Shown: positions 7,061-61,400, counted from the stretch's first letter. The stretch: 64,000 nt of DNA from Magallana gigas (GCF_963853765.1 NC_088854.1:29946001-30010000), one strand, 5' to 3'. Translations and numbers: made by a program. Notes: generated from the sequence alone by a model not told the origin.

Positions 7061-7824
7061 ATGAACGGATTAATAATTGTCGTAGTAGCACTTTTAGGAT
7101 GTGCATGTAAGTATTCAGTGAATTTCTCTTTCTTTCTTTAGGCATCTCTCCTTTTTTCACTTGCATTTGTTTTATTTTGCCTCTTTTAAATTAAAATTCT
7201 CTGTTGCAATGACTTGACTGGCATTAAAAAATATAACATTTCAACAAAAGCGGCAAAAAAATAAATAAATGAAGAAATAAATAAACAGATAAAATTGAAA
7301 ATTTAACGAAAGAAAAACTTTCTTTCTTTTTGTGATAAAATTTGAAATTTTATGTTCTCTGCACTATAGATGCTCAGATGGATAACCCAATGGCCTTGGC
7401 TATGCTTAGCGGGGGGCTACGTGGCAGTGCCAGCTCAGGAATGTCCGGTGGCATGGACCCAATGAGCCTGGCCCTTTTGGGTGGAGCCGGAAACAGTAAG
7501 ATGTTGAGGATGATGACCTTCATGAACATGATGAAGCCCCAGGAACCCACCCCCACCGAGGCTACCCCCGCCGACCCCGCCCAGCCACGAGCCACCCAGG
7601 ACAACACCAGCGTTAACCCAATGATGAACACCCTCATGACCCTCAGTCTGTGCAAGATCAGCGACACCGCCGGGGACCAGAGATTCTGTACTCCATTCAC
7701 CTGCAAGCTGGAATCTCTGCGCCGGTACGCTAACCCCAGCCTCCTGCAATGCCAACAGATGATGGGATGCTGCTTCAAGGATATGAGATCCATGTACATT
7801 GCTAACATGATGAAGGGATTGTAA
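7061..7824 (+). CDS. Secreted Met/Gly-rich protein with Pro/Thr linker and C-terminal six-Cys module, 166 aa (family member 1). Exons 7061-7106, 7370-7824
   Basis: Exon 1 encodes MNGLIIVVVALLGCA plus T|GTAAGT. Acceptor ctatag at 7369 completes Tyr and joins the 7342-7824 ORF (YAQMDNPMALAMLSGG...CKISDTAGDQRFCTPFTCKLESLRRYANPSLLQCQQMMGCCFKD...). GC-richer than flanks. Confidence 0.92.
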
Positions 7825-10543
7825 AAGTACGTTTCTCTTTCTTTTTTGTTCTAACAACTAGTTTTTTCCACCGCTACTGTCGGAATTAATTGGTTTTTCT
7901 AAAATGTACTGACTGTATTGCAAATTTGGTCAAACTGTAATTTTGGTAATTTGAATCCACCCGCTCCATTGAAAAGAAAAACTGAAATTACGGAAATCTA
8001 ATTTACAGTTCAGAATACACTTAAAGTGCTTTTAGAACAGTATTTTGATAAATTGATGCGGATGTGATAAATTGATATAATTTTAAATATGTAATGACTG
8101 ATTTTGAAAACAAATAACGATCCGGTATTCCGCTTACCAAAAAAAAAACCACCCACATGTACTATTATCGTTTCCGCAATCAATATGAGACAATAGTATT
8201 CGTTTACTATAACAGTATACTAGTATATATTTTCCCGATTAAGAACAATCTTTAATCAATAACAGTATCAATCATTCTGAGACATTAATTATTGTCCTTC
8301 TGCAATAAATCTTCAGGACAGAGACTCTCTATCTGCAAATGTCACTTTCGTCGGGTTTCACGTTAAATGTTATAAGTGTATAGATGTATCGGCGCTCAAG
8401 GTGCGCAAAGTGCCATGCCTGCACTTAACACTGACCGCTTGTATATTAAGACAAATTTACATAGACTGCCCCCTGGGGGCAAAGACTCGTAACTACAGCG
8501 TGACAATTACAGGCTTTCTGCCTGCTAAAAACATGTATCTGATGTTATGTGTCGTAATTTATGACCGATGTTTAAAAAAAAATTGTTGTTCTCTTTGCAG
8601 ATATTTTTTGTCTTGGAGATAGAAGAATATCACAAGGTTCATTTTTCATTCCTCCATTTTTTTTTGTTCTGACGGACGACAAACCGGTGATGCCAGCGTC
8701 TGGTCAACAAAGACTGAACATCTAGGTGCCTCTCGTTTTTCATCTGATGGTCTTCAAAAGACTTGTTGTCACTGTACATGTAATTTATTACAGCATAAAT
8801 TATTGTTTTTGTTAATTAAAAAAACAACCAACGTTAATGTATTTTGTTTTATGATATGAATTCAATGTTTTTTTAAAGGCCAAAACCTTACGTGACATTA
8901 GTAAAGAACAAAGAGTGCATTAATTGAGTTAAATTATACATGTAAATGCACTTCGTTTTTGTAGTTTGGTGATTAAATCCACGTGCAATCGTTGCAAAAT
9001 ACAATGTGCTAAGAATAAAGTACACAATAGCAAAGAAAAATCATAAGCTATAGAAAAGCCTTCCTTTTCGCGTATTTAATATGTTTTCTCAAAGTAAAAG
9101 AAAAACAACATTTTAATTTGTTTTCGTTTTTCTGGGATCCAAATATCACAGGCATAAAACAGAGTTGCAGCCAACTAGGATTTATCTACACGAGTACGTG
9201 AAAAAAGTCAGGACCCCACTAGGTGTATCAAAACTGAAGTCACACTTGATTTAAAGTGTATGATTATAAACTTGATTCTAACTGTTAGGAAAAAACTAAC
9301 AAATTACTTGACGTGCCTCTATTGGCAAAGATATATAAGTATGTCTTTGTTTTATAAATATACTAAGTCTTGTAATTAATAAAATCATTAAAAAAAAACA
9401 TGTTTCATTGCTAAATATTATTTATACAATTGAATGCTTTCTTTGGTGATCCATACGGATATGAAAGCTTCGACATTGCAGAAAAAATACATAACTCTTA
9501 GCGGGTTATGTATTTTTTTTTTTAAATGATCGCTACCTTCATAACCCGCATGAATCATTTCTATAGAGCTATGAATTAACTATAAGTTTCCGTAAGAAGT
9601 AGAGGGAATCATATACTTGATAGATGTAAATATAGTAAATAGATAGATGTAAATATATTCTCTTGAACTCGTAATTTTATTACACAAGAATTTTGTGTCA
9701 TCAACTCTTCAAGCAGACGTATCTTATCATTTTTAAAAAAAAAAATAATAATAATATTTATCAAAATAAAATACAAAAAAGACAAAAAAGGCAAACAAAA
9801 TAAACAAGACACCAAACTCAAAAAAAAAAAAAATAACCCCTCCACCCCGCAAAAATGTAACAACAATCATTTGATAATTTTCTGTTATTAATGTTACCAT
9901 TTGCTTTTATGACGTCTGTTGTTCTGTCTCCTTTCTATCATTAATTTATGAATATGAAATGCGTTTTGTTTTTACCATCTTTCTCTTCCACAACCGATCT
10001 TACTTTTCCCCCATATACATATATTTGCAAATTAAGGGATATTATAAGCTACTTTTCTTTTCAAATACTTTTGGCAAATTCATTTCAAAATGTCCGGTCT
10101 GAAGCTAACGCCATCTATCTATCAATATGCATTGTTTGTGAATTGTAAAGTAATTCGAATGACGTAATTGTTATTCATCCAATCAAAATCATTCACTTTA
10201 TACCCAAGTTTTTTTCTAGCTGAATCCGACTAAACGTGTAAATTGTTATGAAATAACTTGGTAAGGTGCTTTCAGAAGAAAGGTTCAGTAAAAAAATATG
10301 ACTATGGTTGCTTGGAGTTGACATTCTTTTACGCCATTTTTTCAAGTTATGTCCAATCCCATCGGAGAAGGCCCGAGAAGCTGCGATTGGTCTAATCAAA
10401 GTAACCGAATGCTACGGCGCTATATATACTGTATCCAAATTAAAAATAAAAAAAAAAGAAATCAACACAAAGCATTCTTGAGAAAAAAATCACATTTATT
10501 AGAAAACAATCAACGAAGAAGACAACAACAATGACGACATGGA

Positions 10544-11400
10544 TTATCCCTGGGCGGCTGTGGAGCTCTGAGATCCGCCACCCCCGCCGTTGAGGAGACT
10601 GAGCATCATGAGCTTGTCCATCTTTGCGCCGCCGCTGTTACCCAGAAGTGACATCATCACGAATGGGTTAATGCCACCCCCGCCTCCTTTGTTGTTTCCT
10701 AGTAAGGACATCATCATCATATTCTGAGCCATGTTTTCTGAGAATTGTGCTTGGACATCTATGGGGAAACCAAAAATGACAATTGAGTTAAATACGAAGA
10801 CAGTCTGTTCTGTTTATAGAAGGTAAAAAAAATATCTTCTGAAAATGAATGAAGCTTACTGATATAAATTATTTCTTCACACAACTGTCAATTTAAATTT
10901 ATCTCTTATCTTTATCCATTCTGAACTTGAGCGCAATTTTTTTGCTATTTTTTGCTATGACTTGAAATTCGGAAATGTATAACGATGGACTTGCATCATT
11001 TATCGCGTATTTACTTAATAATATGAAAATAAATCATATGCATTTACACTTGACATATTGGGAGGAATATTTTTGAGTTACCACAAAAAACAATGCTTTA
11101 AAATGGAGCGCTTAAATAGAATTAAAGTAATCCTTTAAAATGGTATTATACAATCATGCAAATTTGGTAAAAAAATATAAGGAAAAACTCTTGACTTTTA
11201 CTTATATTTGAATTAATTGCGTATTTTTGCTTCGTTACTTCAAATTTTCGACGGAAATTGCTAAGAAAAGAAATTATATTCGATTTGAACAAAAAAAAAA
11301 GGCTTTGTAATTTAACTTTCTAAAAATAGATATGACATAACTTATAAAAATACTTACATGTAACGGTGAATATTAATGCTAAAATAAATAGTCCTTTCAT
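10544..11400 (-). CDS. Secreted Met/Gly-rich protein without the Cys module, 85 aa (family member 2). Exons 11400-11358, 10758-10544
   Basis: Exon 1 encodes MKGLFILALIFTVT plus T|GTAAGT. Acceptor ccatag completes Tyr, giving YVQAQFSEN followed by ORF 10732-10544 (MAQNMMMMSLLGNNKGGGGG...). Same phase-1 split Tyr codon as members 1 and 3. Confidence 0.9.
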
Positions 11401-16122: not shown

Positions 16123-17406
16123 TCAGTTCATCATTTTGCTAAGCTGTAGTGACATATAGTCTTTCAGACAACAACCAATGCCAGCAGGACTACATTTCAT
16201 CAGGTTTGGCATACGGTATTGTCTGAGTGAAAGCAAGTTACAGATGTTTCCGGTGCGGCAAGGGATGGCTTTAACTCCTTCAGTTTCTTTGCAAAGAGTG
16301 TATGGATTGTTAAGGAGGCGCATCATCATGGACCCCATTCCACTACCACCGGCACCGCCGGCTCCGGATAAAGCCATCAAAGCCATTGGGTTTCCTTGTA
16401 CATCTGAAACAATATAGAAATCGTTTAAAATGAGTAAAACTCCTTAACTGCTTACATTGTAACTCTATACTTTTGTAATGAATATATTTGGAATTCCCAT
16501 TAACTCGCTTTGTTATCATTTTAGATATAAAAGTTAAAAAAAAAATGATTGAGATTATCCCATGTTAATCAACAGTTTATCGTGAAGATAATGGCAATAC
16601 AAGTTGTGTATTTTAAATAATTATCATCATGTGAAAAACAGAATGAACACTGACAGTTTATGATTTACAACAAATGGTTATACATGTATATATCATATGT
16701 ACACATTGATAAACATTCGACAAATTTGGAAAGGCACAACGAATACCGCCACCTAAAATGACGACATTTTACAATACAAGGAACCTGCCTCAAGACGCCA
16801 CATTGATGAATAATATATTTGCAATATTATAAAGGAAAAATCAAGAAACCATATGAATATATATATTTAAAATCTACATTTCAAAAGAAATTTGGGAATA
16901 ACAACAAAATTATCAAATTAAAGGACCCCAAAAAATGCAACAAAATATACTAAAATTGGAAATGTTTCGACTTTCTATAGGAGAAAATCTAAGGTTTGTC
17001 GTTTCTATAAGAAATTTTAAGCTACCAATGAATATATTTAGCTGTCAAAAAACACTGGTCTTACCGCCAGAGCTAAGAGCCAATAGAAGGCCTAAATTTC
17101 GCTGTGCGGCTGTAAATAAAATGGCGACCTTTCCCGACATTAAATGTGCATACAATGATAAAAAAAAAAGTGACAAAACGAAATTTAAAAAAAACAAACC
17201 AAAAACATTTTTGCAAAAATATTAGTATCCTCATATTATAGACATACGGAATTTCACAGATTTAGAAATGTCCAAGAGATTAAAAAAAACGGTAAAAATA
17301 ATCCGGGGAAGATATAAAAACAGATGAGAACGTTCATATCCAAAGTGTGAAACTTACAAGTAGTACAACTGAAAACGGCCAAAGCGAGGACAATTTCCTT
17401 GATCAT
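16123..17406 (-). CDS. Secreted Met/Gly-rich protein with C-terminal six-Cys module, 109 aa (family member 3). Exons 17406-17358, 16403-16123
   Basis: Exon 1 encodes MIKEIVLALAVFSCTT plus T|GTAAGT. Acceptor tttcag gives YVQGNP followed by ORF MALMALSGAGGAGGSGMGSMMMRLLNNPYTLCKETEGVKAIPCRTGNICNLLSLRQYRMPNLMKCSPAGIGCCLKDYMSLQLSKMMN. Confidence 0.92.
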
Positions 17407-20061: not shown

Positions 20062-20203
20062 NNNNNNNNNNNNNNNNNNNNNNNNNNNNNNNNNNNNNNN
20101 NNNNNNNNNNNNNNNNNNNNNNNNNNNNNNNNNNNNNNNNNNNNNNNNNNNNNNNNNNNNNNNNNNNNNNNNNNNNNNNNNNNNNNNNNNNNNNNNNNNN
20201 NNN
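20062..20203. other. Assembly gap (142 N)
   Basis: Run of N. Distance and contiguity across it are uncertain. Confidence 0.98.
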
Positions 20204-24318: not shown

Positions 24319-26136
24319 ACAACATGACAGATCTACAGCTAGGTCTATTGATATATGTAGTGCAACCGTATATTGTGTAATTATCACAATAAATCATTAA
24401 AATTTCGAAGTCGCAAGCAAAACGAGGTTAAATACCGGCATATACGACTAAAGGGTATACAAACAAAGCAACAGTTAGGGACTTTACGTTTTTTTCCTTC
24501 TTGAAGACTCAATTATACATCTTTTTGAATCCCATGGTGTCGAAATAAACCAATATTTCACATTTTTGAAGACTGATGGCATAATAATTTAATTCTGACG
24601 TTACGTTTGAATTTTGTACAATTTTACGTCATTTTAAAGGTCAAATGACCGTTTTGATCTACAATGAATTGTAAAAAAAAAAAATATAAGCAATGGATTC
24701 AATGTTAGTTTTATACGATATGAAATGGTTTGAAACAGTTTACGCTTTTTCATAAACCGCTTTGCGGTTGATAAAGCGTAAACTGCCCCAAACCATTTTA
24801 TTTCCCATAAATCAAATAAATATTGAATTCATTCCTTAAATCAAGAATCTCATTTTAGGCAGTGACTGTCGACGGCGCTAAGGTGAGAACCTTTGACCTG
24901 ATGACGTCAAATGGCGTGGTTCACGTCATTGACTCAGTGATGATACCCCCTGCCGGCGATATAGTGACACAGCTGAATGATAACTTTGATTTCACCACGC
25001 TGGTCTCCAAGGTCACTCAGGCGGGGCTTGCTTCTGCACTACAGGGTGAGAATCGTCGACTTGTACACATTATGAACGGTTCATATAAAAATTAAGGGTT
25101 ATACTTTTTGGGGGATGTGGTAGGGTGGGGTGATTTGGTAATTATTTATTCATATTCTGATTGGTTTGAATATTTTTCTTTCAAAATATCTAGTTATGGT
25201 TTTATATGATGGTTTGGTATCCTTTTTTTAGGCAATAATTTGACCGTGTTTGCCCCTACCAATGCTGCTTTTGCGAAACTTAGTGCTTCAACTCTACAGA
25301 AATTAGAAAATGATCCAAATATGCTCAGAGGTACACCACAATCTCAATATTTTTTAAAAAAAGCTATGGATTTAGTATCTTTAATTAAGAAAGTCAATGT
25401 GAAGCATTGCATTCGTTTGGAATCTGTATTTTTAGAGGTCTTGCTATACCACGTTGTTCCGCACACTGTGTATTCCGCTGGATTATTCAACAAAGAGAGG
25501 CTACGAACTCTGGATTCCAACGGGGACCCTATTCAAGTCACTATTACCGGTGAGCAAACTGTTCAAGTATATTAATCATCATCAATATTACACAGTTACG
25601 GCTGTACTAATTGTTATTTCACCCTAGCGTGTTTGTGGAGTCTTCCGTCCCGAACCAAATGATACAGGTTTCATGCATAGGGAAAAAAATCAAAATATTA
25701 AATCAAATTAAAAGAAAAGAAAAAAATCACACACACACGAAATAAATTAATAAATAAGAAGCAGCAAGCTACATGTAGTGAGTTTAAGAACCTAACTTGT
25801 GTATCCACAAACGTATAATGATGGTTTCCAACCGGAACACCTGCCAAGATTGTCGGAAAGCCAAAAAATAGTATTTTAATAGAATCTTGACCAAAATGTA
25901 AATTATCACAAACATTTTTACACAGATAAACTGTTAATATCAATTAGTAATATGAATAAATATTTAAGAGCTTGTCAATAAATGAACACTTTATAAATGT
26001 TTCAGGTGGCAAGGTGTATCTTGACCTTTATTCCCAAGTCACGGAAGCTGACGTCACGGCAACTAATGGAGCTATTCACGTCATTGACCACGTGATCGTC
26101 CCAGATCGCTATTACTTAAATCTCGTCGTGGGTTAA
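23314..26136 (+). CDS. Secreted protein with two FAS1 (fasciclin) domains, TGFBI/periostin-like, 295 aa; divergent paralog of the array genes. Exons 23314-23452, 23733-23950, 24859-25045, 25232-25330, 25436-25549, 26006-26136
   Basis: Signal peptide MIKLLSILSCVQFALCG. Two sets of FAS1 motifs: H1 TVFAPTN, YH (LKYHVV/LLYHVV) and H2 (NGVVHVIDSV/NGAIHVIDHV). All introns are GT-AG with consistent phases; CDS 888 nt, ending ...RYYLNLVVG*. Confidence 0.93.
24199..24335. repeat. Perfect 137-bp nested palindrome (two 68-bp arms, 1-nt spacer), possibly a MITE with TA TSD, in intron 2 of the fasciclin gene
   Basis: The right arm is the exact reverse complement of the left arm. Each arm is itself an imperfect hairpin around TGGGTGGGT/ACCCACCCA. 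Confidence 0.9.
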
Positions 26137-29730: not shown

Positions 29731-31646
29731 TGTTGTTGGTTATTGATCTCAGTAACATAAATTAACAATGCAGATGCAGACATATGTTACTTTAAATTTG
29801 GACACTCAATAACACTTCAAAGTTGTGTATGTTAAAGGGGGGGGGGGTTGAATACCACAAATGCATAAAAAGAATGGCAACTCTGCAAATATTTAAACAT
29901 TCAATAGGTTAAAAAAAAACATAATACATGTATACGTGTGAAATGGACACTGAACCAAGAAACTGTGGTATTGATTCGTTTATTATGTTTGACGGGTTGT
30001 TTTTTTTTTTAGGTAATCCGCTTCGATTGATTTCATATGAGACATTTATGTAATTTCATTTTCGCATTGATTATGTTTTTTTGTACTGCTTTGTTTATTA
30101 TGCAGCAACACTTCATTTATTAAATTATTTAGTTATTTTTGTCCTAAGGAGCATTATTATGAAACACTTTCCTTCATAAGCAAAAATCATTTCACTCAGT
30201 TACATGATGAAAAATATATCTTTACGTAAACTTGTAAGAATTTCGTTCTGGGCAAATTTTTCCTAGATTCATTTCAAAAGTACAGTATTTTAGGAGCGGT
30301 TACACTTTTCAAGGTTCTTTATAATGAAGATGTATGGTTATTTAGATACCAGCAAACGTCATCACATACACATTTGATATTTTATCGAGTTTTAAAACGG
30401 TAATTTAACCAAAAAATAGTAACCAAATCTGATTTTTAAAAATGCAGCAATAAGAGATAGAGATAAAACACATGATGCAAAGTGAAGTCATGGTTAAGGT
30501 TTAGTTTTACTTTGTTTCAGTTTTCTCACACGACGCCTTCTTGATAGTTTGATTCCCCATGGAATTTTAATTTCAGTACCTGAAAACATTTCAATATAAC
30601 ATGAAAATGTTTTTCTTTTTGTTTTAAAAATCAAGGCATCAGCAAAAATGTAAATATGAATATATCAATGAAAATATACGTAGTGGCTTTGTGAAAAAAA
30701 CAAAAAACTGGCACGGAACATTGTTTATAAAATAGGAAAGGAGGGTGGCCGGGGTGGGGGATGGGGTGGGGAGACTGCCTCGAAATCATAAAAAGGCGAA
30801 AAAATCCCTTCTCTAATTTTCAAAGTATCAATCCGTGATGGTGAGGGTTGGAGGGAGTAGGGCTGCATAGTAACTGAACTTTCCATTATGAAAATGTTTG
30901 CCAGTTTTTTTACAAGCTGCAAAAGGGGGGGGGGGGGGGTAGGTAGCTTCATTTAACACCCCCCCCCTCCCCCCGATGCTAGGTCCTTTGCAAATGGTCA
31001 TTCAAAGATAACGAATTTTGACCTCTACATTCCAAGAACGTGAAGGAATCCAATCTCAACGATAAAGAAAAACGTTTAACGTGTGTCGGTAAACGTGAAA
31101 ATGTGATTACAGAAGGTACATGTACATGTATATCTAATGAAAATGTTATTTACTTATAATATAACGAATCCCTTTTTCACAATTTCTACACGATTTTTAC
31201 ATTGATGCATTTTGCAGATTTAAACGAATTTAAATAAAAAACACACCGCAATGTGATATTAGTATTTGGCATTAGTGCATGCTAGTCTCATTATCACATA
31301 TAATATCATAAGACTTTTTGATTGGTAATTTAGAGACTCTTTTCATACTTTTATTACCAAGCAGTTTAGTAAATTTGTTGATGATATTCCAACTATGTCC
31401 TTTTTAAGATCAACTTAATTTTCTGTTTACATGAAAGAGCAAAATGTTTCACAATAATGAATATTTGGTTTAGGTCGCAAGGGGATTCTTATTTGTTTAA
31501 AAAAAAATAACTCATTTAAATGCAATCTATATTAATTAAACGACCATTTTTCTAAATTACACTTATTTGGATCCTCTACTTCATATTGTGGGTAACATAT
31601 GAAACATGGTGATAAGTAATGAAACTTGTATGTGTTTCATTTTCAT

Positions 31647-31649
<3 letters not shown>

Positions 31650-31711
<62 letters not shown>
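31650..31711. repeat. (GA)31 microsatellite; shorter GA tracts at the equivalent site of the other units
   Basis: Pure GA run. Homologous short tracts at about 38250, 44140, 50044, 56000 and 61700. Confidence 0.95.
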
Positions 31712-31718
<7 letters not shown>

Positions 31719-32240
31719 CACAATTAAAAAAATTATATCCTCAGTCTATCTTTTATTGATGTCCATTAACAAGAATTAGTCAGTAAAGTAATTTTTGTTC
31801 TTTCAATAAATGACACGATTACTTTTAAAAAATCCTTCTTAAAAATAAGTTGTCTAAGAAAAAATATACTGTAGAAATATAGGGCGAGAATGATATCATG
31901 AACTGAAGCTAAGTGAATGTGTGGTCAATTCTTCTAGAGATAAATGTCCCCAACTTACGAAAGACCATGCCACCTGAAGAGGTCCTCGGGGGATTTCTGT
32001 CAAATTTGAAATTTTAAAAGCAATCGATATCAAATAAAAATATTGTCCTATATATTTAAAAATGTTTTTATTCTTAATGAGCATGCAATATCCATACAAA
32101 TGTCTGAAATTTGTTATTTGATATGAAGTGAAATCAGTTAAGGCCCTATCGGAACCCACAGGGTGTCCTTAAGAATTATGAAAACATTCATGGACACATT
32201 TCAACGACGGGTGCTAAGATGGTTACATAAATTGGAAAAC

Positions 32241-32318: not shown

Positions 32319-34354
32319 ATGCTCGCCTTTGTAGCTTTGACCGTGATTGTGCAGAGTGTGTTTGGGGGAAACCTGGTAGAGGTTCTACAAAACGACGGTG
32401 AGACGACTTTGATAGCTCTTGTTAAACAAGCGGGTCTGGCCGACGCTCTACTGTCAGGTATGCTGTTTTCAATAATTTAATATATATTAGACGATTTAAT
32501 GATTGAATTGTTTTGTCTAAGCGGAATTACTAGAAAACTCAAGTAGCATTAGTGAAGAGGAGTTTTAATTTTGTTTTTAATTCAAATATGATATCAATTC
32601 GAGAAATGTTTCACCCATTTAACCTCAAAATGACTGCACCTTGCAAATTTTCATTCAAAATAAAACACTATGTAACCACTATTAAGTTTTTCCAAACCAC
32701 TGGTCATCATTACTGCCTTAAACATAATACATATTCGTGACATTTTACCTTTTACAAAATAAATGATATTACTTAATTGAAAGCAAAAAATGATAATCAT
32801 GATCTATGCGAATTTCAAAATCTCATTACATCATTTTATGACTACATGTATACCCTAAATCCCTAATAACAGTAAACGTTGACTGAAGATAGAAATGATT
32901 TATATTACAAATGATTTAAATATAGAGGGTTTTTCTACGTATTATTTCTGCAAAAAAAAAAAAAAAAAAAAAAAAAACCCGATCCGATCGACCTCCTGAA
33001 TTTGTTCTGTAAACAAAATTCACTTTTACGTATTTTTACATAAATGATCATAATACATGTAATAATGCATAAAATTCAAGCAACAAACAGATTCGAGATA
33101 GTTCACCTGGATTTAAAAGAAACTTTAAATTCTGACTATGTGCTCAATCTCTGATAACAATATCATCTGAACGAGAAGTGATTACTAATTTTAATTTTCT
33201 GTTTACTATCACAGGAGAGTACACCATATTTGCTCCAACAAACGCTGCATTCTCCAAACTTCCCCAGTCTGTCCTTGACGGTCTACAGAGAGATACCACC
33301 GCTTTGGCAAATATACTGAAATACCACGTGGTCAAAGGTTCCATTCACAAGGCCGATGCATCCAATGAGCTTCAGTTGGAGACTTTGGCTGGAACCAAAA
33401 TCAGATTCAACATCTATAATCACAATAACGTATGTGTTTTAAAGTTTTCTTTTTTATGTACTAAAATTAATCAAATATATCTTCTCATAAACAATCATTC
33501 AAACTACATAGACATTTTTTGTTTGTACGTGTAGGTTGTTACAGTGGAAGGATCCAAAATCACACACTTTGATCTGACCGCCTCAAATGGAATGGTGCAC
33601 GTCATCGACACCGTGATGATGCCTCCTACAGGAAGCATCGTGGATTTGGTGGCTGGCAACAGTGACCTGAGCACTCTTTTATCTAAGGTGCAGTCAGCTG
33701 GATTAGCCGGGGCACTACAGGGTTAGTTATTATGCTTGTGTTTTTATACATGTTTTCAAATTTTATTTTCTACCATTACTTAAAAAATGAATATTTAATA
33801 TTCCCACTATTTTATACAGGGGATGCTCTAACAGTGTTTGCACCAACCAATGCTGCTTTCAATAGACTTGGTAGTCATGTTTTGGACAACCTTAGAAGAA
33901 ACCCACAGCTTCTTAAAGGTATGCATTTCTCAATTGATATCTTATTTACTGATGATTACAACTCAAATTTAAAATGCGAGTAAGATCTCTCTTTTCTCTT
34001 TAGAAATTCTGGAGTACCACGTCGTTCCTCACACTGAATACTCAGCTGGATTGTACAACCGAGAATACCTCAGAACCCTTGATACTCACCATGACGTCAT
34101 CAGACTTGGAGTCAGCAGTAAGTGTTCAAGCTTATGTTATTGTCACCTTTATTGTTATTTTAGAAATCTGTGCATCGGTAAAAAAAATAATACAATAAAT
34201 TTTTCTCATTCCAGGTACTAATGGTGTTGTTATTAATCATCGTTCTCACGTGACACAAGCCGACATCAGCGCCACCAACGGTGTCGTACACATCATAGAT
34301 CACGTACTTATTCCATCCCGTTATCTTTTCTCTGCGATATTGGGGAAAAAGTAA
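32319..34354 (+). CDS. Two-FAS1-domain secreted protein, array copy A, 297 aa. Exons 32319-32457, 33215-33429, 33535-33721, 33820-33918, 34004-34117, 34215-34354
   Basis: Signal peptide MLAFVALTVIVQSVFG. FAS1 H1/YH/H2 motifs occur twice. Exons of 139/215/187/99/114/140 nt with intact frame, ending RYLFSAILGKK*. AATAAA at 34480. Confidence 0.93.
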
Positions 34355-44764: not shown

Positions 44765-46815
44765 ATGCTCGCCTTTGTAGCTTTGACCGTGTTTGTGCAG
44801 AGTGTTTTTGGGGGAAACCTAGTAGAGGTTCTACAAAACGATGGGGAGACGACTTTGATAGCTCTTGTTAAACAAGCGGGTCTGGCCGACGCTCTTCTGT
44901 CAGGTATGCTGTTTTCAATAATTTAATATATATTAGACGATTTAATGCATGATTGAATTGTTTTGTCTCAGCGGAATTACTAGAAAACTCAAGTGGCGTT
45001 AGTCAAGGGGAGTTTTAAATTTGTTTTTAATTCAAATATTCAAAATAATAAATGATACAATTCGAGAAATATTTCAACCATTTTCCTTCAAAATGACTGG
45101 ACCTTGCAATTCGTCATTCAAAATAAAACACTATGTAACCACTATTAAGTTTTTCCAAACCACTGGTCATCATTACTGCCTTAAACATAATACATATTCG
45201 TGACATTTTACCTATTACCAAATAAATGATATAACTGATTTGAAACCAAAAAAGTGAATCATGATATATGCTAATATCAAAACCTCATCACATCATTTTA
45301 TGACTCCATGTATACCCTAAATCCCTAGTAACAGTAAACATTGACTGAAGATAGCAATGATTTATATTACAAATGATTCAAATATAGAGGGTTTTTCTGC
45401 ATATTATTTCTGCAAAAAAAAAAATAAAAAAAAAAAAAAAAAATCCCGATCTGATCGACCTCCTGAATTTGTTCTGTAGACAAAATTCACTTTTACGTAT
45501 TTTTACATAAATGAGCATAATAATAATGCATAAAATTCAAGCAACAAACAGATTCGAGATAGTTCACCTGGATTTAAAAGAAACTTTAAATTCTGACTAT
45601 GTGCTCAATCTCTGATAACAATATCATCTGAACGAGAAGTGATTACTAATTTTAATTTTCTGTTTACTATCACAGGAGAGTACACTATATTTGCTCCAAC
45701 AAACGCTGCATTCTCCAAACTTCCCCAGTCTGTCCTTGACGGTCTACAGAGAGATACCACCGCTTTGGCAAATATACTGAAATACCACGTGGTCAAAGGC
45801 TCCATTCACAAGGCCGATGCATCCAATGAGCTTCAGTTGGAGACTTTGGCTGGAACCAAAATCAGATTCAACATCTATAATCACAATCACGTATGTGTTT
45901 TAAAGTTTTCTTTTTTGTGTACTAAAATTAATCAAATCTATCTTCTCATAAACAATCAATCAAACTACATAGACATTTTTTGTTTGTACGTGTAGGTTGT
46001 TACAGTGGAAGGATCCAAAATCACACACTTTGATCTGACCGCCTCAAATGGAATGGTGCACGTCATCGACACCGTGATGATGCCTCCTACAGGAAGCATC
46101 GTGGATTTGGTGGCTGGCAACAGTGACCTGAGCACTCTTTTATCTAAGGTGCAGTCAGCTGGATTAGCCGGGGCACTACAGGGTTAGTTATTATGCTTGT
46201 GTTTTTATACATGTTTTCAAATTTTATTTTCTACCATTACTTAAAAAATGAATATTTAATATTCCCACTATTTTATACAGGGGATGCTCTAACAGTGTTT
46301 GCACCAACCAATGCTGCTTTCAATAGACTTGGTAGTCATGTTTTGGACAACCTTAGAAGAAACCCACAGCTTCTTAAAGGTATGCATTTCTCAATTGATA
46401 TCTTATTTACTGATGATTACAACTCAAATTTAAAATGCGAGTAAGATCTCTCTTTTCTCTTTAGAAATTCTGGAGTACCACGTCGTTCCTCACACTGAAT
46501 ACTCAGCTGGATTGTACAACCGAGAATACCTCAGAACCCTTGATACTCACCATGACGTCATCAGACTTGGAGTCAGCAGTAAGTATTCAAGCTTATCTTA
46601 TTGTCACCTTTATTGTTATTTTAGATATCTGTGCATCGTTAAATAAAATAATACAATAAATTTTCCTCATTCCAGGTACTAATGGTGTTGTTATTAATCG
46701 CCGTTCTCACGTGACACAAGCCGACATCAGCGCCACCAACGGTGTCGTACACATCATTGATCACGTACTTATTCCATCCCGTTATCTTTTCTCTGCGATA
46801 TTGGGGAAAAAGTAA
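44765..46815 (+). CDS. Two-FAS1-domain secreted protein, array copy C, 297 aa (A/B mosaic). Exons 44765-44903, 45676-45890, 45996-46182, 46281-46379, 46465-46578, 46676-46815
   Basis: Intact frame with the same exon sizes. Confidence 0.92.
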
Positions 46816-50666: not shown

Positions 50667-52705
50667 ATGCTCGCCTTTGTAGCTTTGACCGTGCTTGTGC
50701 AGAGTGTGTTTGGAGGAAACCTGGTAGAGGTTCTACAAAACGATGGGGAGACGACTTTGATAGCTCTTGTAAAACAAGCGGGTCTGGCCGACGCTCTACT
50801 GTCAGGTATGCTGTTTTCAATAATTAATTATATATTAGACGATTTAATGATTGAATTGTTTTGTCTAAGCGGAATTACTAGAAAACTCAAGTGGTGTAAG
50901 TCAAGAGGAGTTTTAATTTTGTTTTTAATTCAAATATTCAAAATAATAAATGATATCAATTCGAGACATGTTTCACCCATTTGCTCTCAAAATGACTGGA
51001 CCTTGCAAATCGTCATTCAAAATAAAACAATATGTAACCACTATTAAGTTTTTCCAAACCACTGCCTTAAAAATAATACATATTCGTGACATTTAACCTA
51101 TTACCAAATAAATGATATAACTCAATTGAAACCAAAAAGTGAATCAAAATCTATGCAAATTTCAAAATCTCATTACATCATTTTATGTCTACATGTAGAC
51201 CCTAAACTAAATCTCTAATAACAGTAAACGCTGACTGAAGATAGAAATGATTTATATTACAAATGATTAAAGTATAGAGGGTTTTTCTAGGTATAATTTC
51301 TCCAAAACAAATAACCAAAAAAAAAAAAAAAATAAGAAAAAAAAGAAAAGACAATCCGATCGGCCTCCTGAATTTGATCTGCAAACAAAATTCATTTTTA
51401 AATTTTTAAATAAATGATCACGATTATATGCATGAAATTCAAGCAACAAACAGATTATTTCACCTGGATTTAAAAGAAACTTTAAGTCCGGATTTAACAA
51501 TGCAATCAATCTCTACTAATGATTACTAATTTTAATTTTCTGTTTACTATCACAGGAGAGTACACCATATTTGCTCCAACAAACGCTGCTTTCTCCAAAC
51601 TTCCCCAGTCCGTGCTTGATGGTCTACAGAGAGATACCACCGCTTTGGCAAATATACTGAAGTACCACGTGGTCAAAGGCTCCATTCACAAGGCCGATGC
51701 ATCCAATGAACTTCAGTTGGAGACTTTGGCTGGAACGAAAATCAGATTTAACATCTATTATCACAATCACGTAAGTGTTTTAAAGTTTTCGTTTTTTGTG
51801 ATACCCAAATCCGTCAAACCTATCTTCTCGCATACAATTGCTCAAACTACAAAGACATTTTTGCTTGTACATGCAGGTTGTTACAGTGGAAGGATCCAAA
51901 ATCACACATTTCGACCTAACCGCCTCTAATGGAATGGTGCACGTGATTGACACTGTGATGATGCCTCCTTCAGGAAGCATTGTGGATTTGGTGGCCGGCA
52001 ACAGCGACTTGAGCACTCTTTTATCTAAGGTCCAGTCAGCTGGATTGGCCGGGGCACTACAAGGTTCATTATTCTGCTTGTTTTATTATTATTTTTTTTC
52101 CAATTTTATTTTTTTGGCATTGTTTAAAAAATGAATATTTAATATTCCCACTATTTTATACAGGAGATGCTTTAACAGTGTTTGCACCAACCAATGCTGC
52201 TTTCAATAGACTTGGTAGTCATGTTTTGGACAACCTTAGAAGAAACCCACAGCTTCTTAAAGGTATGCATTTCTCAATTGATATCTTCTTTATTGATGAT
52301 TACAACTCAAATTTAAAATGCAGGCAAGATCTCTCTTTTTCTCATTAGAAATTCTGGAGTACCACGTCGTTCCTCACACTGAATACTCAGCTGGATTGTA
52401 CAACCGAGAATACCTCAGAACCCTTGATACTCACCATGACGTCATCAGACTTGGAGTCAGCAGTAAGTATTCAAGCTTACGTTATTGTATCAATCACCTT
52501 TATTGTTATTTTAGATATCTGTGCATCGTTAAATTAAATAATACAATAAATTTTCCTTATTCCAGGTAACAATGGTGTTGTTATTAATCATCGTTCTCAT
52601 GTGACACAAGCCGACATCAGCGCCACCAACGGTGTTGTACACATCATAGATCACGTACTTATTCCATCCCGTTATCTTTTCTCTGCGATATTGGGGAAAA
52701 AATAA
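50667..52705 (+). CDS. Two-FAS1-domain secreted protein, array copy D, 297 aa. Exons 50667-50805, 51556-51770, 51877-52063, 52164-52262, 52349-52462, 52566-52705
   Basis: Intact frame. Variants IYYHNH, PPSG, SNNG. Intron-3 donor GTTCAT. Confidence 0.9.
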
Positions 52706-55700
52706 TCATCTGAACAAACCATTTTGACATTTTTGAAGTCATGTCTCCATTTGATCACACATTGTAATTGTATATACTTGTTATTGAATATGCTTGTTAT
52801 TTTTATTGACTGAAAACGTTATAAATCTGCAATAAACATTGACGAAAAAGAAACCATTGTTCTGGTTGTTGACTACTGGTACTGAGATTTACATTGAGCA
52901 AAATGATTTCATGAAACATTTCAACTTAAATACCTATATATGGCTCTAATGGTGTTTAAGAATTATTATAACAACATAAAATCACTTCAGTGCAAATTGT
53001 ATAATCTATTGAATAGTTTTGTTCACTTTTCCATCAAAATGAGTTTGATTTTTAATTGTTTGAGAAAGAAACCACCACGAACATTATTTTACAGATTCTT
53101 ATGCTTAAAATTCCTCTCAATTTAACACGCATTTTGTAGCAAAAAAATGTTAGTTTTAAAATTAAGATATGAAAAAGGTTGTATTTAAAACAAATATATT
53201 TTGTTTAATATTATAACATATGGCATTTGATCATTATCTCTATTGATACACGCAGATAACTAACACAAATTATAGTTATGTTATTTCTTTTACACTTTTC
53301 CTTTCGGCTTTTTGGCCAGTATTGGCTATAACATATCTAAATTAAATGTTACAAGCGCGTCTTTCTAATTCGACAAGTACGCGGATTGGAACTATTGTTT
53401 AAGCTTCAAATGTAACTGATTATCAAAAAGTAGATATATCTTACTTTATCATTTATTTCGTTTAGCTGCAGTCTATTTACTAACCCTAAAAAGATTTTGC
53501 AATGCTTTAGATTCAGGAAGGTTTAAACTGACACGATGTGATTTATAGCTTTATTGTATTAAAAAAGAACATAAATCGAGACAAACCTTAAAAAAATTAT
53601 CATATGGATAACCTTTTTTTTAATCATTTACTTTTTCAACCAAAATCCCCTTAAAAACCATATTTTTTTGTTAGTCTTTTTTAATGATTCGAAAAACACT
53701 CTTTTTTCTATTGTATAAATCTTAACTTGAACATGTAATTTTTAGGAAAAAAAAATAATAACAAAATTGACGACGATTTATATGTATAACTGAAATTGAC
53801 CAATCAATAATTTTACGAAAATAAACACAGACGTCAAAATTAACTTTGATTGTAAAATGTGGTCAATGAAGTTGACAAAATTTCAAAGATAACAGTTCTT
53901 GAAGATATGACAGTGACATCGTTATATTCGCTAAATTATCCGTGAAATAAAAGACAAAACAACGTTCACAACATAGTAATTTAGATATGTCACAATAGCG
54001 CAACAGTAAAACAAATGATCTTCAGAAGTAAATCAATCGATTTTTAATGCTATTACATGTACTAGGATAAATTCCTTCCTTGCTGCTTTCAAAGGGGGGG
54101 GGGTGTTCCATAAATGTTTCTTCTTCTAAGATTTTCATGTAGGTATAGTAAATGCAATATTGTTGATAAGTAAATGTTTGATAGGAGTAAAACATATTCT
54201 GATTCATTTGCGATTAAATTCTAATATGTCTTTCCTTCATTCAAGGATGAAAAAAAGTTACAAAGTTTTACATGTATAATCGTTACTGGTAGTGGATCAT
54301 TCAAACAAATCCAAGCCAAATCTGTCAAAGGATTTCTCATGAAGAAGGTTGTAGTTAAAGTTTATTGTATTTACAGGCATTACATTTTCAAAGTGTTGCA
54401 AAGTAAAATCAAAGAATACAAATAAAAGCAAACAGAAAATAAATGGTTGTGAACACTGACTTCACATTAACTTCGAAAATTCAATTATTTTATCGTAAAA
54501 GAGGAAAAGGTCTGAATATCTCATCAGCAAAATACTTCTTGTCATGCACACTGCCTTTTTCGCAATGCATTAGCGACTATTTCCATTTCTTCCGCATACA
54601 CCTACATACTTATGACATTTTAGATATCAAGTTTCTAAAAGATATATATTTTTTTACAATTTAAGATTGTTTAATGCCTATAAAAAAAAATAAAAACGTC
54701 GGAAACGGTCGGTATAAACGTTACCCCAGCTGACTCACAAAAAAAACCCCTCGTATAATTGAAAGCTTGATGGAATGAACGCCACATGTCCAATGGCTAT
54801 GGCACCCGTTCATTCGTCCGAACACTTGATCACTCGCGCAATCCTATCACCTAATCTAATAACAATCACTTTCAGTGTACAAGAGTTGCACATAGATGCA
54901 AGACATACAGCAAGATTTCAAACATTTGCATCTTACAACGGTCGCGCTCTAAATCGAACAAACTTATCACGAATACTTTTTCATATGTGATTACCGTATA
55001 CAGGAAATATTTTCCTCGATTTCCTTCCGCGCTTTTTGCCCTCGTTGTCAACCATGAAATTTAGGTCTGTGCGAATTTCAATGTCTTTAACGTATCTCCC
55101 TTTCAATACAGCTTTGTTTTGGAATATTCAGAACAGTGCAAAACCGTTTAATTTGCAAGTCAAGACGAGGAAAAATAATACGGAACAAGAATAAGCCCTT
55201 TTATAATATATTGTCAGCATTTTACGATTGAAATCCAAATTTAACGGTCACACAAATACATTCTTATTTTTAATCATGCGCCAATTGCTAAAATCAACCC
55301 CCCCCCTCCCGAAATGCTAGCTATATATATATAGGTATAAGAGATAAGGAATTTTGACCTCTACATTCCAAAAACGTGAAGGAATCCAATCTATGCGATA
55401 AAGCAAAACGTAAAACGTTTAACGTGTGCCGCTAAACGTGAAAATGTTATTACATATGCTACTCGTATCTCTAATGAAAGTATTAGTTACTTGTAATATC
55501 ACGGATCCTGAACAGTTTGTTTTTCACAAAAAACCCACTGTAATATGATAGTTGTATTTGCTAGACATCTTATCACATTTGATATCATAATGACTTTTTG
55601 ATTTGTTATCCTTATATCTTTTCATGCTTTTATTATAGAGTAATTTATTAAACTTGTTAAAAATATTGTACCTGTGTCCTCTAAAGATCATCTTGATTTT

Positions 55701-58412: not shown

Positions 58413-61400
58413 TCATCTGAACAAACCATTTTGACATTTTTGAAGTCATGTCTCCATTTGATCACACATTGTAATTGTATATACTTGTTATTGAATATGC
58501 TTGTTATTTTTATTGACTGAAAACGTTATAAATCTGCAATAAACATTGACAAAAAAGAAACCATTGTTCTGGTTGTTGACTACTGGTACTGAGATTTACA
58601 TTGAGCAAAATGATTTCATGAAACATTTCAACTTAAATACCTATATATGGCTCTAATGGTGTTTAAGAATTATTATAACAACATAAAATCACTTCAGTGC
58701 AAATTGTATAATCTATTGAATAGTTTTGTTCACTTTTCCATCAAAATGAGTTTGATTTTTAATTGTTTGAAAAAGAAACCACCACGAACATTATTTTACA
58801 GATTCTTATGCTTAAAATTCCTCTCAATTTAACACGCATTTTGTAGCAAAAAAATGTTAGTTTTAAAATTAAGATATGAAAAAGGTTGTATTTAAAACAA
58901 ATATATTTTGTTTAATATTATAACATATGGCATTTGATCATTATCTCTATTGATACACGCAGATAACTAACACAAATTATAGTTATGTTATTTCTTTTAC
59001 ACTTTTCCTTTCGGCTTTTTTGGCCAGTATTGGCTATAACATATCTAAATTAAATGTTACAAGCGCGTCTTTCTAATTCGACAAGGACGCGGGTTGGAAC
59101 TATTGTTTAAGCTTCAAATGTAACTGATTATTAAAAAGTAGATATATCTTACTTTATCATTTATTTCGTTTAGCTGCAGTCTATTTACTAACCCTAAAAA
59201 TATTTTGCAATGCTTTAGTTTCAGGAAGGTTTAAACTGACACGATGTGATTTATAGCTTTATTGTATTAAAAAAGAACATAAATCGAGACAAACCTTAAA
59301 AAAATTATCATATGGATAACCTTTTTTTTCATCATTTACTTTTTCAACCAAAATCCCCTTAAAAACCATATTTTTTTGTTAGTCTTTTTAATTGATTCGA
59401 AAAACACTCTTTTTTCTATTGTATAAAACTTAACTTGAATATGTAATTTTTAGAAGAAAAAAAATAATAACAAAATTGACGACGATTTATATGTATAACT
59501 GAAATTGACCAATCAATAATTTTACGAAAATAAACACAGACGTCAAAATTAACTTTGATTGTAAAATGTGGTCAATAAAGTTGACAAAATTTCAAAGATA
59601 ACAGTTCTTGAAGATATGACAGTGACATCGTTATATTCGCTAAATTATCCGTGAAATAAAAGACAAAACAACGTTGACAACGTAGTAATTTAGAACTATC
59701 ACAGTAGCACAACAGTAAAAAAATGATCTTCAAAAGTAGATAAACCGATTTTCAATGCTATTAGTAGGATAAATTCCTTCCTTGCTGCGTTGAAAGGGGG
59801 GGGGGGGGGGGTTGTTCCATAAATGTTCCGTTGTCTAAGATTAAAATGTAGGTATAGTAAATGCGATGTTGTGGACTAGAAAATGTTTTATAGAAGTAAA
59901 ACGAATACTGATTCATTTGCGTTTAAATTCTAATATGTCTTTCCTTAATTCAAGGATGGAAAAAAGTTACAAAACTTTTACATGTATAATTGTTACTGGT
60001 AGTGCATCATTCAAACAAATCCAAGCCAAATCTGTCAAAGGATTTCTCATGAAGAAGGTTGTAGTTAAAATTTATTGTATTTACAGGCATTACATTTTCA
60101 AAGTGTTGCAAAGTAAAATCAAAGAATACAAATTAAAGCAAACAGAAAATAAATGGTTGTGAACACTGACTTCACATTAACTTCGAAAATTCAATTATTT
60201 TATCGTAAAAGAGGAAAAGGTCTGAATATCTCATCAGCAAAATACTTCTTGTCATGCACACTGCCTTTTTCGCAATGCATTAGCGACTTTTTCCATTTCT
60301 TCCGCATACACCTACATACTTATGACATTTTAGATATCAAGTTTCTAAAAGATATATATTTTTTTACAATTTAAGATTGTTTAATGCTTATAAAAAAAAA
60401 TAAAAACGTCGGAAACGGTCGGTATAAACGTTACCCCAGCTGACTCACACAAAAAAACCCTCGTATAATTGAAAGCTTGATGGAATGAACGCCACATGTC
60501 CAATGGCTATGGCACCCGTTCATTCGTCCGAACACTTGATCACTCGCGCAATCCTATCACCTAATCTAATAACAATCACTTTCAGTGTACAAGAGTTGCA
60601 CATAGATGCAAGACATACAGCAAGATTTCAAACATTTGCATCTTACAACGGTCGCGCTCTAAATCGAACAAACTTATCACGAATACTTTTTCATATGTGA
60701 TTACCGTATACAGGAAATATTTTCCTCGATTTCCTTCCGCGCTTTTTGCCCTCGTTGTCAACCATGAAATTTAGGTCTGTGCGAATTTCAATGTCTTTAA
60801 CGTATCTCCCTTTCAATACAGCTTTGTTTTGGAATATTCAGAACAGTGCAAAACCGTTTAATTTGCAAGTCAAGACGAGGAAAAATAAAACGGAACAAGA
60901 ATAAGCCCTTTTATAATATATTGTCAGCATTTTACGATTGAAATCCAAATTCAACGGTCACACAAATACATTCTTATTTTTAATCATGCGCCAATTGCTA
61001 AAATCAACCCCCCACCCCCCTCCCGAAATGCTAGGTATAAGAGATAAGGAATTTTGACCTCTACATTCCAAAAACATGAAGGAATCCAATCTATGCGATA
61101 AAGCAAAACGTAAAACGTTTAACGTGTGCCGCTAAACGTGAAAATGTTATTACATATGCTACTCGTATCTCTAATGAAAGTATTAGTTACTTGTAATATC
61201 ACGGATCCTGAACAGTTTGTTTTTCACAAAAAACCCACTGTAATATGATAGTTGTATTTGCTAGACATCTTATCACATTTGATATCATAATGACTTTTTG
61301 ATTTGTTATCCTTATATCTTTTCATGCTTTTATTATAGAGTAATTTATTAAACTTGTTAAAAATATTGTACCTGTGTCCTCTAAAGATCATCTTGATTTT

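Follow-up and report, generated by a model that had tools for sequence, protein, structure and literature searches.

A six-cysteine C-terminal domain of small, secreted Met/Gly-rich proteins in Magallana gigas and other bivalves

Results

A Cluster of Three Genes for Small Secreted Proteins

We analyzed a 64,000-nucleotide (nt) stretch of the Magallana gigas genome (GCF_963853765.1 NC_088854.1:29946001-30010000), hereafter called the window, in which all positions are counted from the first letter. The window is AT-rich (33% GC) and carries a three-gene cluster of small secreted proteins, which we call members 1, 2, and 3. The mature products of all three genes are rich in Met (12%–14%) and Gly (8%–21%), and two of them, members 1 and 3, end in a six-cysteine (six-Cys) C-terminal domain, referred to below as the module, with its cysteines numbered C1 to C6 and the adjacent C5 and C6 written as CC. 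The module probably defines a previously undescribed, bivalve-restricted family of Cys domains.

Member 1 is encoded on the plus strand. As read from the sequence, its first exon (7062–7106) opens with the start codon, encodes a hydrophobic signal peptide, and is bounded by a phase-1 donor (GTAAGT), the last base of the exon being the T of a split TAT (Tyr) codon; the NCBI and UniProt models of the gene (P0063 and P0006) have the same start. Intron 1 (7107–7369; 263 bases, GT..AG, phase 1) is skipped in four out of four public runs, whose contigs join position 7106 exactly to 7370. Two of these runs are recorded as RNA, and two are only guessed to be RNA. The second exon (7370–7826), over which contig cover is unbroken, encodes the entire mature protein of about 150 aa in a 455-nt coding part that extends from the acceptor (7369/7370) to a TAA stop codon at 7822–7824. 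The N-terminal part of this protein (7372–7614) is, by composition, a Met/Gly/Pro-rich low-complexity region built of repeated NP/DP-hydrophobic-GG units, and about 16% of the residues before C1 are Met. The rest (7615–7821) is the conserved C-terminal domain of 69 aa, delimited by alignment and by an AlphaFold2 (AF2) model. Its six-Cys core (7651–7773) has the spacing C-x11-C-x4-C-x15-C-x5-CC, with CCFKD at 7768–7782, and the stop codon is reached 16 codons past the CC, as borne out by transcript contigs. All four runs depart from the genome at 7826 and resume with sequence from 8601, and therefore member 1 has a second intron (7827–8600), located in the 3′ untranslated region (UTR), which begins only 2 nt past the stop and is followed by an exon starting at 8601. 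Member 1 is hence expressed as a transcript whose splicing agrees with the sequence reading.

Public M. gigas protein models are residue-identical to the genes of the window over long stretches. One of them, A0A8W8L097 (P0006), quits the member 1 module after C1-x11 and enters the 3′ UTR exon. This model is wrong: it makes a mid-module skip into the 3′ UTR exon.

Member 3 is encoded on the minus strand and follows the same plan, with a shorter Met/Gly part. Its exon 1 (17358–17406), which comprises the start codon, the signal peptide, and a phase-1 donor, was read from the sequence and agrees with a C. angulata model (P0008). It is followed by a 45-nt mini-exon (17065–17109, phase 1-1, likewise a sequence reading) that adds one extra hydrophobic-Gly unit, and by the last coding exon (16123–16403), which encodes a short Met/Gly region and the six-Cys module and ends with a TGA stop codon at 16123–16125. 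As in member 1, the conserved C-terminal domain (16126–16329, 68 aa) was delimited by alignment and an AF2 model; the spacing of its six-Cys core (16168–16293) is C-x10-C-x5-C-x15-C-x6-CC, followed by LKD (CCLKD). The mature protein has an isoelectric point (pI) of 9.2 and a net charge of +6. A good GTAAGG donor is found 11 nt past the stop (16111–16110, minus strand), which suggests that member 3 may share the post-stop 3′ UTR intron arrangement of member 1. The mini-exon is present in models P0008 and P0015 and is missing from the C. virginica (P0012) and Saccostrea (P0010) orthologues; the low-complexity part therefore seems, from this comparison of sequences, to have been extended both by units of exon size and by repeats within exons.

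Between these two genes, also on the minus strand, lies member 2. Exon 1 (11358–11400) was read as the signal peptide and a phase-1 donor that splits a TAT codon as in member 1, and exon 2 (10544–10758) encodes a Met/Gly-rich mature protein and the stop, with no Cys module. The mature product of 70 aa is 14% Met and 21% Gly, contains no cysteines, and shows weak similarity to the N-terminal region of member 1. In the public M. gigas model K1QLF6 (P0015), the member 3 module breaks off after its first half and is spliced onto the member 2 exon some 6 kb away; this model is a wrong, chimeric one.

Conservation and Extent of the Module

An initial annotation, made from the sequence alone, had recognized a six-Cys module of about 45 aa at 7648–7780 and had pointed out its likeness to a second copy in member 3. 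The Cys spacings and shared motifs it gave are indeed found in both proteins: L-x-SLR-x-Y-xx-P-x-L lies between C3 and C4 and CC[FL]KD follows, and the coordinates agree with the core of member 1 to within one codon. The module is thus real, but its size has to be corrected to about 65–68 aa. The conserved unit begins about 12 residues before C1 and extends 13–20 residues past the CC to the C terminus, so as to include a pre-C1 segment, NP..L..L-C, and a post-CC tail, KD..S....M.

When the mature proteins of members 1 and 3 were compared by BLASTP, 37% identity was obtained over 57 residues of the module (E 2e-8), and therefore the similarity of the two modules is not due to chance. In an alignment of 25 sequences, L12, the six cysteines, and G51 are invariant, while S34, P41, and D56 reach 90% conservation or more. 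The invariant Leu precedes C1 and the invariant Gly precedes the CC; the conserved Ser and Pro fall between C3 and C4, and the Asp comes after the CC. The distance between C3 and C4 is 15 residues in every family member. Two types of spacing can be told apart: type A, to which member 1 belongs (C-x9-11-C-x4-C-x15-C-x5-CC, with one outlier that has x9 and x7 at the first two gaps), and type B, to which member 3 belongs (C-x10-C-x5-6-C-x15-C-x6-CC). Throughout the 564-Mb assembly, the module profile matches only the member 1 and member 3 sites, i.e., there is one copy per subtype.

The region that precedes the module behaves differently. Between Crassostrea/Magallana proteins and their Saccostrea or C. 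virginica orthologues, identity is 91%–94% in the module and 63%–78% in the Met/Gly part, and the module is therefore the more tightly constrained of the two. Across the family, the N-terminal region, with the signal peptide included, is a low-complexity stretch of 24–109 residues containing 3%–33% Met and 10%–41% Gly, and its conservation between members ranges from 28% to 78%. The net charge of the module ranges from −1 to +5; most modules are mildly cationic, and a value of −1 was obtained for two members, among them that from Dreissena. In both oyster and Mytilus, a single exon encodes the Met/Gly region together with the module, the sole coding phase-1 intron following the signal peptide, 35–93 codons upstream of C1.

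A Family Found in Bivalves

The initial annotation had proposed a profile search with the module. Run against 1.84 billion cluster representatives, this search led to 19 clusters, 17 of them at E ≤ 1e-10, and all of proteins 91–178 aa long; Pfam scans pointed to no known family, WAP and chitin-binding domains included. The named members come from Ostreidae, Pinctada imbricata, Argopecten irradians, Mytilus edulis, M. galloprovincialis, M. trossulus, Tegillarca granosa, Ruditapes philippinarum, and Dreissena polymorpha. No non-bivalve member is present among the named matches; the matches from run assemblies carry no taxon assignment. Word-indexed searches added close orthologues from Saccostrea, Ostrea, C. 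virginica, and C. angulata, all annotated as uncharacterized. All members share one layout, in which a signal peptide and a Met/Gly-rich low-complexity stretch precede the C-terminal module. The coding sequence has been assembled in hundreds of public run assemblies, where member proteins are found on 185–283 contigs. No tandem paralogues were seen within ±10 kb of the genes in Mytilus, Argopecten, and one further assembly.

In UniProt, the name "Clip domain-containing protein" has been given automatically to the M. gigas member 1 protein A0A8W8L2E2, and the Dreissena member goes by the name "Hydrophobin." A literature search with family accessions, LOC numbers, and sequence motifs found, among the papers it covered, none that mentions them. 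The genes are already in public annotation as uncharacterized proteins, but the family and its domain have not been described before.

Profile and Fold Searches

To the whole Pfam library, searched with the 25 modules and the three mature proteins of the window at E ≤ 10, no domain family could be matched; in particular, hmmscan gave no match of the 25 members to the defensin, CLIP, trefoil, WAP, and chitin-binding models. Single-member matches to Tubulin, SAP_RNF34, Vitelline_membr, and P2 (E 0.09–0.2) were taken as chance. A sequence profile search of the PDB returned only CDK inhibitor 3 (E 3.1), which was rejected.

The reverse approach, six-frame searches of the genome with individual Pfam models, gave the following results. 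The CLIP model (PF12032) produced five marginal partial matches, all of them outside the window; as none has all six cysteines of the pattern, they could not be assembled into an oyster CLIP set for profile-profile comparison. Only chance-level matches outside the window were obtained with Defensin_beta (PF00711). Defensin_big (PF14862) had no match anywhere in the assembly, and hence this search had no positive control. The absence fits the presence/absence variation of big-defensin genes in oysters, and limits of the search could also explain it.

The AF2 model of the member 1 module has a mean predicted local distance difference test (pLDDT) score of 78.5. It contains three helices (residues 2–15, with C1 near the end; 27–38, starting at C3; and 57–68), a loop that holds C2, and one two-stranded hairpin (44–47 and 51–54) that carries C4 and the CC. 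When the whole mature member 3 was modeled, the same topology was obtained, with pLDDT values of about 70–83 in the module and below 50 in the Met/Gly region, which is thus predicted to be disordered. Between C3 and C4, the conserved residues L-x-S-[LIM]-x-x-Y form a pattern compatible with an amphipathic helix, and this segment is helical in both models.

Foldseek comparison with the PDB gave nothing at E ≤ 0.001, and the best matches in the AlphaFold database (AFDB) had E values of about 0.6 (Swiss-Prot) and about 2 (clusters). The nearest neighbors, none of them significant, were helix-plus-hairpin scorpion toxins and plant defensins of the cis-defensin-like kind. The ESM atlas yielded no usable match when searched by language-model features; searched by shape, it gave only unrelated large bacterial and fungal proteins (template-modeling [TM] scores 0.42–0.54), which were rejected. 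Seven fold searches, among them those of the PDB, AFDB Swiss-Prot, the AFDB clusters, and the ESM atlas, retrieved neither defensin nor clip structures. A β-defensin fold, which the initial annotation had suggested looking for, is thus not what is predicted. Taken together, the models and searches predict a domain fold that is not a three-stranded β-defensin sheet and is unlike any solved structure.

Other Features of the Window

Downstream of the cluster, on the plus strand, four open frames match the Pfam Fasciclin (FAS1) domain (25240–25575, 33178–33534, 45639–45995, and 51519–51929; E 3e-13 to 4e-21) and are probably parts of a single multi-FAS1 (periostin/BIGH3-like) extracellular matrix gene or of several such genes. 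A pair of identical open frames of 41 aa, located 5.7 kb apart on the same strand (55423–55545 and 61123–61245), points to a recent segmental or transposon duplication. A run of 142 N at 20062–20203 is an assembly gap or masked stretch, and a (CT/AG)n microsatellite on the minus strand (31584–31745) contains a long SL repeat in one of its frames.

Discussion

A Candidate Scaffold Domain

The joint explanation that we favor, by a modest degree of belief, is that the module is an undescribed, bivalve-only six-Cys domain with a predicted new fold, carried by proteins of the scaffold or matrix type. An extracellular scaffold or matrix role, which we infer from composition alone, is by itself plausible but falls somewhat short of probable. 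The composition has counterparts in the literature. In Pinctada fucata, Met-rich regions are common to almost all of the acid- and detergent-insoluble proteins recovered from the nacre, the prisms, and the hinge ligament. One such protein is NU-5, of which a recombinant Met-rich fragment forms aggregates and alters its conformation with calcium, and whose knock-down disturbs nacre (PMC7591529). For Mytilus, too, M-rich proteins have been reported from the shell layers (PMC4517812). By analogy, the flexible Met/Gly part would bring about hydrophobic self-association, which Met oxidation might tune, as has been proposed for Met-rich insoluble shell and ligament proteins of the pearl oyster. The module, which would fold into a helix (C1), a loop (C2), an amphipathic helix (C3), a β-hairpin (C4, CC), and a final amphipathic helix, could then serve as a disulfide-locked, stable knob at the end of the chain that binds a partner or caps the assembly.

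A lead in the same direction comes from the fold searches. The C-terminal residues 231–291 of the Pinctada maxima Glycine-rich protein 2 (P86969) were aligned by Foldseek with the whole member 1 module (27% identity, TM score by query 0.49). The match is weak (E 2, probability 0.20), and P86969 is not among the 19 clusters of the family profile. P86969 is a Gly-rich, mantle-expressed shell matrix protein (PMC3893171, PMC4660305), and knockdown of its P. fucata homologue, AB734770, has a nacre phenotype (PMC3893171). Coming from a weak structural match, this link is a lead only.

Several observations weigh against a new domain on scaffold-type proteins. One Mytilus shell proteome supplement contains no peptides of the Mytilus member. 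The AF2 models reach only moderate pLDDT values (65–79) and were built from shallow, overlapping alignments of 23–25 sequences, and the predicted helix-rich fold could be wrong. The remaining points on this side, the mildly cationic charge of most modules and several defensin-like traits of the Cys framework, are those that two rival explanations would account for.

According to the stronger of these rivals, which we consider unlikely, the proteins are humoral or mucosal host-defense or signaling peptides that resemble big defensins in function, whatever their fold, with a hydrophobic N-terminal part and a cationic, disulfide-rich C-terminal part. A membrane-active peptide would fit both the strongly basic member 3 (pI 9.2, net charge +6) and the net positive charge of most modules. 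The proteins are also small and secreted, their post-CC tail is predicted to be an amphipathic helix, and the number of contigs per member protein (185–283) suggests strong expression in commonly sampled tissues. However, several members carry a low or negative net charge. Bivalve antimicrobial peptide families are fast-evolving, and high conservation is unusual among them, whereas the module is 91%–94% conserved across oyster genera. Also speaking against host defense are the single copy of each subtype per genome, without the presence/absence variation and copy expansion that such families typically show, and a composition that parallels that of Met-rich scaffold proteins (PMC7591529).

The new-domain explanation can be carried one step further, to a reading in which we place little confidence. 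The module may represent an undescribed disulfide-rich fold that dates from the base of the bivalves and anchors or caps Met/Gly elastomer-like segments in a bivalve-specific extracellular material, e.g., the insoluble shell scaffold or the Met-rich hinge ligament. If so, the family would belong to the molecular tools that make up the bivalved body plan. Many lineage-restricted proteins of bivalve secretomes combine a low-complexity region with a small Cys domain, and class-wide conservation is rare among them; the present family is kept from oysters to zebra mussels while being uncharacterized in all annotations and having no Pfam entry. With a domain of 65 aa in proteins of 90–170 aa, it is small enough to be approached directly by structural and biochemical methods. 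Should the domain be a new fold linked to Met-rich scaffolds, it would offer a handle on the assembly of the insoluble shell and ligament framework, and a diverged trans-defensin would widen the known molluscan range of that superfamily. In either case, our results correct two public gene models (A0A8W8L097 and K1QLF6) and question the automatic "Clip domain" label.

Comparison with Known Cys-Rich and Met-Rich Proteins

An evolutionary tie to defensins, the second rival, is less probable still. In this explanation, the module is a strongly diverged trans-defensin, i.e., a relative of β-defensins, the big-defensin C-terminal domain, and arthropod CLIP domains, with C1-C5/C2-C4/C3-C6 pairing and a misleading AF2 topology, for which the moderate pLDDT values would leave room. 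The six cysteines of all members follow the C..C..C..C..CC order of β-defensins and of the big-defensin C-terminal domain, ending in CC. The CC pair lies on the last predicted strand, where the two side chains would point to opposite faces as in trans-defensins, and the name given automatically to A0A8W8L2E2 also speaks for such a relationship. As in big defensins, the proteins are small and secreted, a hydrophobic N-terminal part precedes the Cys domain, and the gene contains a phase-1 intron.

In the details, the likeness is incomplete. The spacing in β-defensins and big defensins is about C-x4-8-C-x3-5-C-x9-14-C-x4-7-CC. The C2-C3 (4–7) and C4-C5 (5–6) gaps of the module are defensin-like by these ranges, whereas C1-C2 (9–11) and the invariant C3-C4 (15) are longer and fall just outside them. 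The C3-C4 segment of β-defensins forms a strand and a loop; here, it has a conserved amphipathic helix pattern and is helical in both models, and a single hairpin with helices is predicted in place of the three-stranded sheet. Among the 25 members, there was no match to Defensin_beta, Defensin_big, or CLIP at E ≤ 10; the six-frame searches with the three corresponding models never matched the window, fold searches returned no defensin or clip structure, and no member has a serine protease domain. The charge of the family is only mild for defensins. The Met/Gly region, which the initial annotation had considered as a possible assembling part, proved to be variable, of low complexity, and modeled with low confidence: while the N-terminal domain of big defensins is a conserved globular β-α-α-β unit, the corresponding part of the family varies in length and is predicted to be disordered. 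Gene structure also differs. Big defensins and β-defensins share a phase-1 intron just 5′ of the Cys domain (PMC7203481), but in the present genes no intron is located directly 5′ of the module, and the phase-1 intron follows the signal peptide instead. We conclude that the module is not a demonstrable defensin and that its defensin-like Cys order is most likely convergent. Of the two options considered in the initial annotation, a co-opted defensin fold and an unrelated new Cys domain, the evidence favors the latter.

Other six-Cys frameworks were compared as well. The arthropod CLIP domain (PF12032), a small domain of mixed α/β fold, also has a six-Cys framework ending in CC. In contrast to CLIP domains, the module is the C-terminal end of proteins of 90–180 aa, with no S1 protease domain after it in any member, and PF12032 gave no match to the 25 modules at E ≤ 10. 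The automatic UniProt name of A0A8W8L2E2 is an indirect hint to the PROSITE CLIP profile. We do not assign the family to CLIP because there is no PF12032 match and no protease domain and because the module forms the C-terminal end of proteins shorter than 180 aa. A trefoil (P) domain, C-x9-10-C-x9-C-x4-CC-x10-C, was likewise rejected, since the module has no Cys after the CC, the spacing differs, and there is no Pfam match. That the helix-plus-hairpin core is a degenerate cysteine-stabilized (CS) α/β domain (cis-defensin, scorpion-toxin-like) is very improbable, as only one Cys is on the helix, CC stands in place of CxC, the CxxxC/CxC signature is missing, and the structural matches to scorpion toxins and plant defensins are non-significant.

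The closest parallel to the proteins as a whole, if they are indeed of the scaffold type, would be the Met-rich insoluble proteins NU-5, LMP, and MRNP34 (PMC7591529). These, too, are secreted bivalve proteins with Met-rich, Gly/Pro-containing low-complexity regions, and self-assembly of an insoluble scaffold is the role proposed for such regions. Unlike members of the present family, they are much larger (45–180 kDa), and the present Cys domain is not described in them (PMC7591529); the likeness is compositional only. A new Cys domain fused to a Met/Gly region would be a variant of the pairing of low-complexity regions with small Cys domains in secreted molluscan proteins.
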